Shown in pieces: positions 56,083 through 63,100 of a stretch of 64,000 bases of DNA (position 1 is the stretch's first letter; each line of letters starts with the position of its first letter). Source of the DNA: Magallana gigas (Eukaryota); contig NC_088854.1 in NCBI RefSeq assembly GCF_963853765.1, positions 38,812,001 through 38,876,000 of the forward strand. The letters run 5' to 3'. The position numbers were made by a program, and so were the translations under genes. Below the pieces are notes generated by a model, which was given only the letters and a program-made list of their open reading frames with translations, did not search any database and had not been told where the DNA came from.

Positions 56083-59000
56083 CTAGCTGATTCGCTTCCT
56101 TCTTGACGTATACAATGAGGTAAACGTTGGTACCACGTGCTTGTTGCATTCCTTATCAACACAACAGAAGCTACAGTCCATAGCCATGTTCGGGAACCCA
56201 GACGGATTGTCGTCCATCGTTAGGATACAGTCCGGGTTTGTAGCAGTTTTCTGGTACCATTTATTCTTACACACATCAACCGTTACACACCTGTTTGGGA
56301 AAGAAAACGTTCATTTTGCAATCAATTTGTTCCAAAGTAAAAATTGTAAGTAGAGCTAATTTTCGAAATTCGATTTTAAACGAGTAAAATTAGAGCGAGA
56401 CAATGAGTTTTAAGTAAAGTGATTTCAGTATGTTACATGTAGTAACGTACCCTTTAGTTACGATCCTTCCTCCTTGTTGGTCTTGTTTGACTGTTGACAT
56501 ACAGTAATGGGAGTCACTGGAACATGTTGTCAGTTCCTGGGATTGGCAGGTCTGGTCTTTACAAGTGTAGCACTGGAAATCTAAGAGAAAAAAATTGAAA
56601 ATCGATATTCGAATACTAGTATTAATATTAAATTGATTGACTTCTTGGCAACGAATTTAATAACTATGATTTTTTTTAATTCAAGAAAATTGATGCATTT
56701 GAAAGGAGACAACAATATGTCGTCATTCAACATGAAATAATTCTTAATTGAATAAAAGAGGTTTTTAAAACAATAAGCATTTTTATATTAATCAACCTGG
56801 TTTTGGTGTTGTGGTGGCGTTAGTTGTTGGTGTTGTTACTGGAACAGTTGTTGTTGGTTGATTTGTTGTTGTTTGAGCCTTGGTGGTTGAGATCTTTTTT
56901 GTTGTCATGGTTGTTTTCTTGTCTGTGGTAGTCGTTTGAGTGGTTGTAGGCGGCTGGGTGGTTGTTGACTGCACTGTTGTAGTTATCGGGACAGTTGCTG
57001 AAGATGGATGAGTCGAAGTTTGAACTGTAGTAGTATGAATCTTAAGAGGTGACTTTGTAGTCGAGGTCTTTTTTGTGGTAGCAATTGTCTTTTTATCTGT
57101 CGTAGACTGCAGTGTGGTAGTTTGTTGTGTTGTTGTTGCTTTTAGGGTTGTCGCCCCTTGTGTAGTTGTCGCCGCTTGTGTGGTTGTTGCCGCTTGTGTA
57201 GTTGTCGCTGGCTGTGTTGTTGTCGCCGCTTGTGTAGTTGTCGCCGCTTGTGTGGTTGTTGCCGCTTGTGTAGTTGTCGCTGGCTGTGTTGTTGTCGCCG
57301 CTTGTGTAGTTGTCGCCGCTTGTGTGGTTGTTGCCGCTTGTGTTGTTGTTGCTGCCGGTGTAGTTGTTGCCGCTTGTGTTGTTGTTGCCGCTTGTGTAGT
57401 TGTTGCTGCTTGTGTGGTTGTTGCCGCTTGTGTAGTTGTCGCTGGCTGTGTTGTTGTCGCCGCTTGTGTGGTTGTTGCCGCTTGTGTTGTTGTTGCCGCT
57501 TGTGTAGCTGTCGCCGCTTGTGTAGTTATCGCCGCTTGTGTTGTTGTTGTCGCCGCTTGTGTAGTTGTCGCCGCTTGTGTAGTTGTCGCCGCTTGTGTAG
57601 TTGTCGCTGCTTGCGTAGATTTTCCTGTGTGCCCAGATGTTACTGGATGTTTCGTAGAAATAGCGCTTGCCGATGAATGAAATTTGATGGGAGATTTGGT
57701 TGTTGTAACTTTCTTAGTTGTTAATGTTGTCTTTTTATCTGTTGTCTGTGTTTTCGCTGTTGTAGCCGCTTGTGTACTTGTCGGTGCTTGTGTGGTGGTT
57801 ACTGCTGGAGAAGATGTTGCTGCATGCGATGTAAAACAAACGTTTATTGTTGAATAATTTGTCAATATATTAACATTTACATCGATATATCATTTGAAAT
57901 TTATTAGCTTAGAGGGTTTGAATCTGGGAGATATTTTAACTGTAAATGTGTGTGTACTGTAAGCGTAATTAATTAATTACTGTAAATATGGTACATTATT
58001 ATAATCAAAATTCATTTATTGAATTATAATTAAGGACATAAAATTGATAAGCCGATTTGCGCTTTCTGGATACATAACATTTCCCACCACAACAAAGATT
58101 TAAATCAATCGTTTTTATAGGGATGCAAAAATTCAAAGATAGTTTTTTTTTGTAAAGTTCAGCTAGCCTACCTTGACTTGACGCTGGTGCTGATGTTGTG
58201 GGGTTTTTAACAACTACATTAGAACCTAAACAAAAGATATTATTAAATTGTTATGCACAAAATCGTTTTAAAAAGGAAATAATGCTTATATATATCTGGT
58301 ATTTATTCGCTCCTTTAAATTTACCTGATGTCCCTGGTTGTGTTAACTGGTTTTGACATTTGGAACAAGTACCGCTTCCTAAAATGAGACCACCAATGTG
58401 AATATGAATATCCAAGTCAATTCCTCCTTGTCCGCTGTTCTGGTTTCCATGATTCTGGCAACAGATTTGACCAGAATGAATGTGGCACTGTGCAGAATTC
58501 CCGCTATTGCCATTGTTACCACTGCCGTTACCATTACCGCTGTTACCATTTCCATTGTTGCCGTTGTTACCATTTCCATTGTTGCCGTTGTTACCATTTC
58601 CATTGTTACCGTTGTTACCATTACCGCTGTTACCATTACCGTTGTTACCATTACCATTATTACCATTTCCATTGTTGCCATTGTTTCCATTTCCGTTGTT
58701 ACCATTACCGGTGTTACCATTACCGTTATTACCATTTCCATTGTTGCCGTTTCCGTTATTTCCTCCGTTCCCACCATTTCCACCTTGACCTCCGTTTCCA
58801 CTATTTCCGCCATTGCCACCATTTCCACCACTTCCCCCGTTTCCACCATTACCTCCGTTGCCGCTATTTCCACCATTACCACCATTTCCACCTTGACCTC
58901 CATTTCCTCCGTTCCCACTATTTCCACCATTACCGCCATTTCCACCTTGGCCACCATTTCCTCCGTTCCCACCATTTCCACCCTGGCCACCATTTCCACC

Positions 59001-60790
59001 ATTTCCAGCATTACCACCATTTCCTCCTTGCCCTCCATTGCCACCGTTTCCGCCCTGACCCCCATTACCTCCATTGCCACTATTTCCACCATTTCCACCA
59101 CTTCCGCCATTGCCACCGTTTCCACCTTGCCCACTGTTCCCTCCGTTTCCACCATTACCGCCGTTTCCACCATTACCTCCGTTTCCGCTATTTCCACCAC
59201 TTCCGCCATTGCCACCACTACCCCCATTACCACCATTTCCACCGTTCCCATTCGAGCCAGGAGTTCCGTTTGATCCCGGAGAACCCGGACGACCGTTTGA
59301 GCCCCCTGGCGATGTTGTCGGTTTTGAATTAGGTTTATTTGGACCTGTTGGAGGTTTTTGGTTTGGTTTTCCTCCTGTTGGGGGTTTTTGGTTTGGTTTT
59401 CCTCCAGTTGGAGGTTTGTTGTTAGGTTTTCCTCCAGTTGGCGGTTTGTTGTTAGGTTTTCCTCCAGTTGGGGGTTTCGTGTTAGGTTTTCCTCCAGTTG
59501 GGGGTTTCGTGTTAGGTTTTCCTCCAGTTGGAGGCTTATTGTTTGGTTTTGTGTTCGGTTTCGTGTTAGCTTTCTTGTTACCATCATCATCTTCAGCTCT
59601 CAATCGTTGATCTTCTTCTACAGTTCATAAACATGAGACACATGCAAAGCAGCTTTAATTCAAACAAATTCTTTCAACTATCTCACAAAATACAGCGCCA
59701 TATTAAAAACACCTTGTACCTTTTCCCTCTGCATTACACAAACTGCCGGCACAGCACCAGGTGCAGACTCCTTCGTACCCGGTCCTATCACCCCCGTAGC
59801 ATTCCTCCTCATTGTTTTCCTCTTTATTCATACATGTCTATGATAATTTTAAGAAAACAATTAATATTTTTTGAAGGAGGGCGTTTTGATTTAAAGTTAT
59901 TGTTATACCTTTCACTTAACGAGAAACCAAGTTCATAACAAACAATTAAACTATCAAACGATTACCAAATGTGGTTTTATTAATGGCGTAATGTGTCTTC
60001 CCAGACTAGAGTGATGTAAATTAGTGCACTCTTGTTCTTCCTTAAAATTAACATCGGTCTCACTTTGGTGCTAATGCATTATTTCGACATTAATCTCCCT
60101 AACAACGTACCTGCATATGAGAGCAGCCCTTGGTTACCAGCACCGATCCGTCTACATAGTATCGTCGCTTAGTAACGCAATGCTCCTGAAAATTCATAGA
60201 GACGTTCCTTAAAAGCGATAAACTATTTACATAACCTTTGAAAAAAGGAAACGGTATTAACCCTTATGGTATATTTGTTTTCGAGGTTATGTATTTAGAT
60301 ACAAACGAGATTCTAAAAAGTTGTACGTAACTTTATCTTTAGTTAGCTTCTATACGTAATGGCAATAGAATTACTTAAGTTAATGTAGAATTATTAATTA
60401 ATATATATTTTGCAATATTGAGAGTATTCAATATGAAGACTGTAAATAATGTTTAATACGTGCCATGTTATATTTGCCAACGACCTGTTGAGAACTGATC
60501 GCTGACCTGACAAACAGCAAGTAGTCATGCCATTTTCTCTATTTTGTACAGTTAAATATAAACACATGTTCACGGCAATAAAATCATCGGAAACAAAGGC
60601 TGTACGTGAATGTCTCTCGCGAATGTACAATACTTGGTTTACAGTGATATTACGCCAATGCTTACATGGCCCGCTTGACAGACGGCGGTTTGACTGCAAC
60701 TTTCGCCTTCCTTCAAGTTGTCGCATGAGTAACAGCTATACTGTTCAGTGTTTTCTCTCGTAGAAGGAGCACAGTTCGCTAAAGCTATGC
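56083..60790 (-). CDS. Secreted modular protein: Ly6/uPAR three-finger domain - (KPNxKPPTGG)7 - Gly/Asn repeats - His/Cys motif - Thr-rich mucin tract - second three-finger domain
   Basis: Phase-consistent GT-AG exons: 60790-60666 ([41 protein letters not shown]), 60185-60111 ([25 protein letters not shown]), 59837-59720 (TCMNK...[27 protein letters not shown]), 59617-58325, 58225-58172, 57819-56797, 56580-56451 ([31 protein letters not shown]...VTKG), 56290-56083 ([11 protein letters not shown]...[14 protein letters not shown]...RRKRIS*). Both domains have 12 Cys ending in CC-x4-CN. Confidence 0.85.
57150..57612 (-). repeat. Coding 18-bp minisatellite (TTTQAA, about 25 copies)
   Basis: gccgcttgtgtagttgtc unit on the plus strand. 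Confidence 0.9.
58500..59250 (-). repeat. Coding Gly/Asn low-complexity repeats (GGN-type then NGN-type)
   Basis: ccaccatttcc / ccgttgttacc units on the plus strand. Confidence 0.9.
59340..59545 (-). repeat. Coding 30-bp minisatellite (KPN[TNQ]KPPTGG x7)
   Basis: cctccagttggaggtttgttgttaggtttt units on the plus strand. Confidence 0.9.
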
Positions 60791-62555: not shown

Positions 62556-63066
62556 AAAAGTTTGCAAAGAAGTTAAGTGGAAGTAAACGATTGAATTTAT
62601 AACAGGATCCTCAAAAAAAAAAATAACCGTGTATTATCTGAAATGTTACATTTTTGTATATAACATCTCAAATAGGTCATTCATTCTTTTTCAGAGGAAA
62701 TTCTTCTATTGACTTAAAATATTTAGCGATGACGAAAAGTATGTTTATCGGTTTAACTCCAATTTTAATTTTGCATTTAAGCAAATATTTCAATCCGATC
62801 AAAGCAAGTTGTGCTTGATTTTTGGTATGTCTTTGTTGCTGATTTTTTTTTTTTTTTTTTTGGTCAGTTTTGCTTAGGATTTTTTGCACATGCATTTGAC
62901 CATATTTGTGCCGTCATTTATCTGAAGCAACACCGATTGCGTTTCTTACTCATCTAATAACGTTTAACCATAATCAAAAGAATAAATAAAATAAATGAAA
63001 GCATTTTAAGGATAAAAAGTCAATTCTGAACTTAGATTTTTCGATAAGATGAACAAAGATACTTGC

Positions 63067-63100
63067 AAGCAATAAAAACCAGGAGACGTGTTCCAGCCAT
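63067..63100 (-). CDS. Probable first (signal peptide) coding exon of the three-finger/GN/mucin gene
   Basis: ATG GCT GGA ACA CGT CTC CTG GTT TTT ATT GCT T joined to GC ATA GCT TTA GCG gives MAGTRLLVFIACIALANCA. This needs a GC donor (GCAAGT at 63066-63061). Total CDS would be 3060 nt, 1019 aa. Confidence 0.55.

Follow-up and report, generated by a model that had tools for sequence, protein, structure and literature searches.

Domains of the Ly6/uPAR (LU) superfamily, which adopt the three-finger fold, are mostly familiar from small regulators, secreted or held by a glycosylphosphatidylinositol (GPI) anchor, and from toxins. They are generally extracellular protein binders (PMC7053344), and proteins carrying several of them are known, among them uPAR, C4.4A, the SPF pheromones and Drosophila proteins with 2–44 LU domains (PMC6600238, PMC7053344). 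They measure 60–90 residues and have a conserved framework of at least 8–10 Cys that ends in CCxxxxCN; ten of these Cys are plesiotypic, to which LYPD6 adds an extra disulfide in loop 3 (PMC6600238). A 2026 survey of invertebrate LU proteins reports about 83 of them per mollusc genome and lists unusual architectures (PMC13719153). Not among these is the one described here, encoded on the minus strand between positions 63100 and 56083 of a stretch of 64,000 nucleotides (nt) of the oyster Magallana gigas (NCBI RefSeq assembly GCF_963853765.1, contig NC_088854.1, positions 38,812,001 to 38,876,000 of the forward strand), referred to below as the window: a dumbbell-like protein in which two different 12-Cys LU domains, LU-A and LU-B, are separated by a 790-residue repetitive spacer.

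Parts of this design are shared with described proteins. The closest are human LYPD6 and LYPD6B (6gbi, 6ib6, 6zso; Pfam UPAR_LY6_2), whose 12-Cys LU domain provides the best profile and structural matches across both domain types; these are proteins of about 170 amino acids (aa) with a single LU domain and a GPI anchor, whereas the oyster protein has two LU domains, no predicted anchor and the long spacer. In C4.4A, also called LYPD3, LU domains occur together with a Ser/Thr/Pro region of mucin type that is heavily O-glycosylated (PMC7053344). Its two LU domains are adjacent and N-terminal, its mucin region is C-terminal and about 80 aa long and the protein is GPI-anchored; in the oyster protein, which is predicted to be free, the LU domains enclose the mucin-like region. 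GPIHBP1 joins an LU domain to an acidic, intrinsically disordered segment that aids ligand capture (PMC6600238). In this mammal-specific, GPI-anchored protein with one LU domain, the acidic region is N-terminal and reaches about 50 aa, whereas the acidic stretch of the oyster protein follows LU-A. Insect intestinal mucins, peritrophins and the gel-forming mucins of vertebrates share a more general design principle, in which Cys-rich binding or assembly domains flank long O-glycosylated repeats; these proteins are unrelated in sequence to the oyster protein, and their ends are CBM14 chitin-binding or VWD/CK domains in place of three-finger domains. No VWD, C8, TIL or cystine-knot Pfam domain was detected on any exon product, and the oyster protein, judged from its sequence, is mucin-like in composition only and not a gel-forming mucin.

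The gene is real, and it is expressed as one transcript. Its nine exons agree in phase throughout and splice into an uninterrupted coding sequence of 3060 nt for 1019 aa (Table 1), as a preliminary description of this DNA had proposed. RNA contigs from three runs of three studies, together with raw poly-A reads, were mapped to positions 56001–60900, with the joint of intron 1 lying outside. Exact joints in RNA contigs of the three runs, read as CT..AC on the plus strand, bridge each of introns 2–8, which lie between exons 2 and 9; five of these seven are also bridged by one or two raw poly-A reads each. Individual contigs connect exons 2-3-4-5, 5-6-7 and 7-8-9, the last of these in one contig in each of the three runs, so that the claimed union of three-finger and repeat exons in one messenger is borne out. 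In bins lying wholly within introns 2, 3 and 6 the RNA depth is zero; exons 5 and 7 are covered throughout in two runs. First mates among the raw reads fall largely on the plus strand, matching minus-strand RNA in the usual stranded library, and the 3' untranslated region (UTR) extends below position 56083, with RNA contigs reaching 56001.

The previously proposed junctions thus stand for the introns between exons 2 and 9, and intron 1 had to be corrected. The acceptors of all eight introns are AG and the donors of seven are GT; in intron 1, the frame is kept only by a GC donor, which has the classical context T|GCAAGT, and a nearby GT donor leads to a stop. In the stretch covering exon 1 and the 5' UTR (63030–63250), a fraction of 0.45–0.75 of the sequence words is present in RNA runs from the same studies, including two runs that contain the gene body, and the predicted N-terminus resembles the start of a Haliotis protein (MAGQVLL...). 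JGI metagenome contigs contained no exact match to the junctions of exons 1/2 or 8/9.

One could still suspect that two or three neighbouring genes, or a repeat collapsed during assembly, have been misread as one open reading frame (ORF). Short-read contigs do break inside exons 5 and 7, and no single read or contig of the three runs and the raw reads crosses the repeat interiors of these exons. Their continuity is deduced from the open genomic frame, which is splice-compatible over 431 codons in exon 5 and 341 in exon 7, and from unbroken RNA depth. With the chains of joined exons and the empty introns described above, and with RefSeq models of Haliotis that have the same layout from end to end, an artefact of this kind appears extremely improbable.

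Within the gene, intron 1 contains at 62435–62556 a 59-nt inverted repeat whose arms are 92% complementary, are separated by a 4-nt loop and each form a smaller hairpin; it looks like a miniature inverted-repeat transposable element (MITE) or a foldback element. At 57539, in the TTTQAA array of exon 7, the RNA contigs of all three runs have an in-frame 3-nt deletion relative to the assembly, the cause being either allelic variation in repeat length or a minor discrepancy in the assembly. At 57477–57968, over the 5' portion of exon 7 and into neighbouring intron 6, a small number of raw poly-A reads have their first mate on the minus strand and may represent weak antisense transcription or noise.

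From its N-terminus, the protein consists of a signal peptide, LU-A, an acidic linker, Lys/Pro-rich decapeptides, GGN repeats, NGN repeats, a His/Cys module, Thr-rich tracts, LU-B and a basic tail of 19 residues. The low-complexity spacer of about 790 aa announced in the preliminary description extends over aa 118–907; its blocks are intrinsically disordered and are interrupted by the small His/Cys module. After LU-A comes an acidic stretch of 16 residues, and the spacer continues with seven KPNxKPPTGG units (net charge +17), a GGN block of 161 aa (62% Gly, 27% Asn) and an NGN block of 88 aa (55% Asn, 39% Gly). The His/Cys module follows at aa 493–548, within positions 58338–58520, and packs five Cys and five His into 56 residues; no Pfam family matches it, and an ESM Atlas feature search with it gave no usable match. 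The Thr-rich region, of about 360 residues, contains 27–48% Thr (46–48% in its Thr-rich repeat part) and includes the TTTQAA array, encoded by an 18-nt unit in about 26 copies; Tandem Repeats Finder reports arrays of 18 nt × 26, 30 nt × 6.8 and 18 nt × 27. A scan for hydrophobic 19-mers over the whole protein found the signal peptide as the only one and no C-terminal hydrophobic segment, which makes a GPI anchor or a transmembrane helix unlikely. The protein is thus predicted to be secreted and unanchored.

Both ends of the protein are, by sequence profile and by models of their abalone counterparts, LU three-finger domains of the LYPD6-like 12-Cys kind, and the earlier recognition of such a domain at each end is upheld by these two approaches. 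LU-A (aa 31–113) and LU-B (aa 911–1000) contain 12 Cys each and end in CCAGSLCN and CCVDKECN, respectively. A hidden Markov model built from the domains of other species only recovers them over their whole length in the spliced oyster protein at aa 27–120 (35.8 bits, 4.3e-13) and aa 908–1013 (106.3 bits, 5.7e-35), with 12 of 12 Cys aligned in both. The family profile, whose alignment (A1) includes the window's own exon pieces, matches among solved structures LYPD6B (6zso, 2.8e-5), LYPD6 (6gbi, 6.4e-5), candoxin (7.7e-4) and Lynx1 (7.7e-3), followed by TGFBR2 ectodomains. In Pfam, the exon 8 product passes the cut-off of 21.2 for Toxin_TOLIP with 23.0 bits and matches UPAR_LY6 at E 4.5e-3, the exon 4 product matches UPAR_LY6_2 weakly (E 0.15), and Haliotis LU-A scores 22.4 for UPAR_LY6_2 (cut-off 31.5) and 17.9 for Toxin_TOLIP (cut-off 21.2); LU-B of the homologues was not detected by Pfam. 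AlphaFold models of the Haliotis counterparts reach a predicted local distance difference test (pLDDT) score of 91.2 for LU-B and 82.3 for LU-A. The LU-A model matches LYPD6 (6gbi) at E 2.7e-5 with a template modelling (TM) score of 0.68; the LU-B model matches 180 chains at Z>=5, best the third domain (D3) of uPAR at Z 8.1, and every match listed is a three-finger domain or a receptor ectodomain of three-finger type.

The complete domains of relatives contain all 12 Cys in one framework, type A being shorter (81–83 aa) and type B longer (about 90 aa). The additional loop-3 disulfide of LYPD6 fits the count of 12 Cys here. These domains therefore combine the Cys framework with its CCxxxxCN end, profile similarity and, on the abalone counterparts, the three-finger fold that characterize the LU superfamily. 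An orthologue of LYPD6 was considered and rejected: the protein has two LU domains and lacks a hydrophobic C-terminal segment, and its UPAR_LY6_2 score lies under the cut-off. Because it departs in these respects from the subfamily, the domains are named LYPD6-like and the protein is not filed as LYPD6. A recent internal duplication was rejected as well. LU-A and LU-B are 27% identical, are encoded by three and two exons, and are each nearer to their own gastropod counterparts (35–41% for LU-A, 45–49% for LU-B); LU-A has a conserved loop EENNxExC, and LU-B the conserved loops KWWxxT and DDxPxG.

The kinship with LYPD6, LYPD6B and the Lynx proteins, the nearest solved relatives, could indicate a secreted signalling modulator, whose LYPD6-like heads would bind LRP6 of the Wnt pathway or nicotinic receptors and whose mucin stalk would set range or retention. 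LYPD6 does bind LRP6 and modulates the nicotinic acetylcholine receptor (PMC6600238), and the same window contains an intronless gene for a Cys-loop receptor (Table 1). That gene, however, is separated from the present one by 53 kb and three unrelated genes, and the oyster protein is predicted to lack the GPI anchor that LYPD6 and Lynx proteins need for localization to rafts together with their receptors. Since, in addition, a 790-residue repetitive spacer and a high RNA contig depth suit structural secretion better, and the UPAR_LY6_2 score is below the Pfam cut-off, we consider a signalling role quite unlikely.

When exon 9 was compared by phmmer with 1.84 billion representative proteins, 17 were returned, and all those with a named organism are from molluscs. 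Among the relatives are gastropod proteins. In Haliotis rufescens, XP_048245376.1 (937 aa, 17 predicted isoforms; RefSeq models of 877–951 aa) consists of a signal peptide, LU-A, an acidic linker, Gly/Lys/Pro repeats, the His/Cys module, a Thr/Pro region and LU-B, followed by a third LU domain; the automatic names of these models are integumentary mucin C.1-like, mucin-19-like and collagen-like (collagen alpha-1). In the caenogastropod Batillaria attramentaria, KAK7502626.1, a 'Sodefrin-like factor' in UniRef, has LU-A, the linker, the module and two copies of LU-B. The order of parts is thus the same as in the oyster, but the gastropod proteins have an extra C-terminal LU domain, which in Batillaria arose as a duplicate of LU-B. 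A short acidic stretch directly follows LU-A in three of three full-length proteins. The His/Cys module could be aligned in five sequences from five species, each with five Cys, and reads PCHxHxGxxC..NHG, then alternating I/L-x-I-x-I-x-GG, then CxC. Since Haliotis and Batillaria share the layout including this module, the gene family is old in molluscs. Word-indexed protein searches with the His/Cys part of exon 5, the abalone LU-B region and the 3' part of exon 7 returned only the query itself.

A related bivalve is represented by a contig of an ENA metagenome assembly (ERZ21930238), in which exon 9 is 67% identical to that of the oyster. The same contig has an orthologue of exon 5, with an acidic start, KPNSKG repeats, ATQAP repeats and the His/Cys module, as well as a mucin exon of PTT type and both LU-B exons. 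The contig is derived from an animal, and most of its called genes do not translate in the standard code, one of them having a Trp where the DNA has TGA; the stored protein products are for this reason artefactual. Two copies of the initial part of the LU-B first-finger exon are present on it, at 8184–8303 and 8302–8430, in different frames and about 100 nt apart, in what looks like a partial local duplication.

Comparison of these proteins points to conserved LU-A, His/Cys module and LU-B, between which the repeat blocks turn over and keep their general character. The gastropod units are SKSGGHG, GGPGGKS and ATQPP, unlike those of the oyster, and the GGN/NGN block is absent from the orthologous exon 5 of the related bivalve and from the Haliotis and Batillaria proteins, which marks it as a recent lineage-specific expansion. 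This bears on a possible role in the shell, in which the Gly/Asn repeats would interact with mineral or chitin in the style of nacrein/N66 and the LU heads would fasten the protein to the organic framework. Modular block-copolymer designs are frequent in shell proteins, and the GGN and NGN repeats amount to about 250 residues. Repeats of [GNN]n type have been reported for nacrein, pearlin, N66 and N14 (PMC6003135). The argument from Gly-X-Asn repeats made in the preliminary description is nevertheless weakened, as these repeats are not among the conserved parts. The Pfam scan of exon products turned up no domain of carbonic anhydrase or of any other shell protein, and exon 5 offers neither the carbonic anhydrase match nor the conserved Gly/Asn repeats of a nacrein/N66-type protein. 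A search for motifs of the abalone counterpart in the supplement of the abalone shell proteome was negative, which is weak evidence; a motif search in the supplement of an oyster shell-proteome paper, probably devoid of sequences, gave no match either and is uninformative. With its repeats lineage-specific and its abalone motifs missing from the abalone supplement, the assignment to shell matrix loses weight, and we hold it to be unlikely.

The Lys/Pro decapeptides invite another comparison. They bear a loose likeness to the decapeptide AKPSYPPTYK of mussel foot protein-1, they form a basic array, and the related bivalve has its own Lys/Pro-rich array of KPNSKG; the protein might then be an adhesive or cement component, with LU heads cross-linking the adhesive. 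The oyster repeats lack Tyr, however, and 3,4-dihydroxyphenylalanine (DOPA) chemistry is therefore impossible in them. The gene is present in many adult-type RNA runs of several studies rather than in settlement stages only, and the gastropod counterparts keep the layout and make no cement. Such a function thus seems very unlikely.

In the oyster genome, the His/Cys module and exon 4, which encodes the third finger of LU-A, each match this locus only, whereas LU-B-like exons are found at 27 or more places, and several of these paralogues join a Thr/Pro-rich stretch to the first LU-B exon. Paralogues of LU-B type are clustered at C1:67.36–67.40 Mb, C1:23.97 Mb, C2:52.59 Mb and C5:46.8–47.0 Mb; at least four LU-B units are present at C2:52.59 Mb, with Thr- and Gln-rich low-complexity ORFs in between. 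Gastropod proteins also include strings of LU-B domains spaced by Ser/Thr/Pro linkers. On the strength of the oyster paralogues and of these strings, a mucin stalk combined with LU-B is a common molluscan plan, of which the oyster gene is an LU-A-capped, single-copy version.

We found no published description of the architecture, of its peptide motifs or of LU proteins in molluscan mucus or shell. The earlier impression that this arrangement was undescribed therefore agrees with the literature searched and has to be qualified for the databases, in which the same gastropod layout is already present under mucin-like names. The architecture is real and conserved, and the family is filed under misleading automatic labels (integumentary mucin, mucin-19, collagen alpha-1, sodefrin-like).

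Taken together, the layout leads us to propose, with moderate confidence, that the protein is a secreted, mucin-like tether, predicted to be O-glycosylated, with two different binding heads, for which epithelial mucus or glycocalyx would be the likeliest location and shell matrix a less likely one. Each LU head would bind its own, different protein partner, and the glycosylated spacer would keep the two heads tens of nanometres apart. The Thr-rich tracts are probably O-glycosylated, which would make this part stiff, whereas the Gly/Asn and Lys/Pro parts would be flexible and basic; the spacer would conserve its physical character rather than its sequence. In this way the protein may serve an extracellular secretion, be it mucus, glycocalyx or another matrix, as an extended heterobifunctional tether or cross-linker. 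Two distinct ligands are likelier than a symmetric cross-link, because the heads are only 27% identical, have been kept separately since the bivalve/gastropod split and have their own conserved loops. It is speculation that the five Cys of the module could permit disulfide multimers, since it depends on the cleavage site of the signal peptide whether a Cys stays unpaired.

Several points weigh against this proposal. The favoured mechanism is deduced from the architecture. The folds were modelled on the abalone counterparts, 35–49% identical to the oyster domains, and the Pfam matches to LU families lie mostly under the curated cut-offs, for single exon products and homologue domains alike. The TTTQAA block contains Pro at only 2%, which is unusual for the Pro/Thr/Ser region of a classical mucin. 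Added to these are the uncrossed repeat interiors of exons 5 and 7. The dumbbell layout is seen from end to end in one bivalve, the oyster, and in two gastropods; in the related bivalve, the 2.8 kb that precede the exon 5 orthologue, including an extension of 1.67 kb, showed no LU-A.

Table 1. Exons of the gene and other features of the window, with coordinates relative to its first nucleotide.
Feature	Position	Strand	Description
Exon 1	63067..63100	-	Start codon and signal-peptide residues 1–11 (MAGTRLLVFIA); GC donor (T|GCAAGT), phase 1; sole in-frame join
Exon 2	60666..60790	-	End of signal peptide and first finger of LU-A (Cys 1–4); joint 60185|60666 in three RNA runs and two raw reads
Exon 3	60111..60185	-	Second strand pair of LU-A (Cys 5–6); RNA joints on both sides
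Exon 4	59720..59837	-	Third finger of LU-A, acidic loop EENNEEEC, CCAGSLCN end (Cys 7–12); RNA joint to exon 5
Exon 5	58325..59617	-	Acidic linker, seven KPNxKPPTGG units, GGN block, NGN block, His/Cys module
Exon 6	58172..58225	-	Micro-exon, 18 residues, Ser/Thr-rich; joints 58225|58325 and 57819|58172 in one contig in each of three runs
Exon 7	56797..57819	-	Mucin-like Thr-rich region including the TTTQAA array (57147–57618)
Exon 8	56451..56580	-	First finger of LU-B (Cys 1–5)
Exon 9	56083..56290	-	Fingers 2–3 of LU-B (Cys 6–12, CCVDKECN), basic tail ending in RRKRIS, stop codon
Cys-loop receptor ORF	1647–3173	+	Intronless, 508 aa; complete subunit of a Cys-loop ligand-gated ion channel; Neur_chan_LBD 3.8e-54, Neur_chan_memb 4.2e-30
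D8C exon	13981–14472	+	Uromodulin-type D8C (PF23283), tandem paralogue
D8C exon	26845–27249	+	Uromodulin-type D8C (PF23283), tandem paralogue
D8C exon	39268–39888	+	Uromodulin-type D8C (PF23283), tandem paralogue
Microsatellite	476–982	-	GA-type; (ER)n in ORF
Microsatellite	16448–16876	+	GA-type; (ER)n in ORF
N run	9075–9223		One run of 149 bases

Elsewhere in the window (Table 1), the three tandem paralogous D8C exons match their Pfam family at E 3e-13 to 3e-18 and probably belong to three neighbouring genes for secreted proteins. Some LU proteins modulate Cys-loop receptors such as the one encoded near the start of the window.

If the protein does present two LU heads on a glycosylated spacer, the LU family would gain a structural role, in a matrix or in mucus, and the gene would be a concrete, testable candidate for the organization of molluscan mucus or another secretion. 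More tentatively, and with rather less confidence than in the tether itself, a molluscan class of LU-capped mucins can be envisaged, in which three-finger domains would replace VWD/CK or chitin-binding domains as anchors or network formers, with the single-copy gene as its conserved founder and an uncatalogued 5-Cys module that might multimerize through disulfides. The case also illustrates how a real domain architecture is concealed by automatic names if its folded domains are distributed among short exons on either side of huge repeats.

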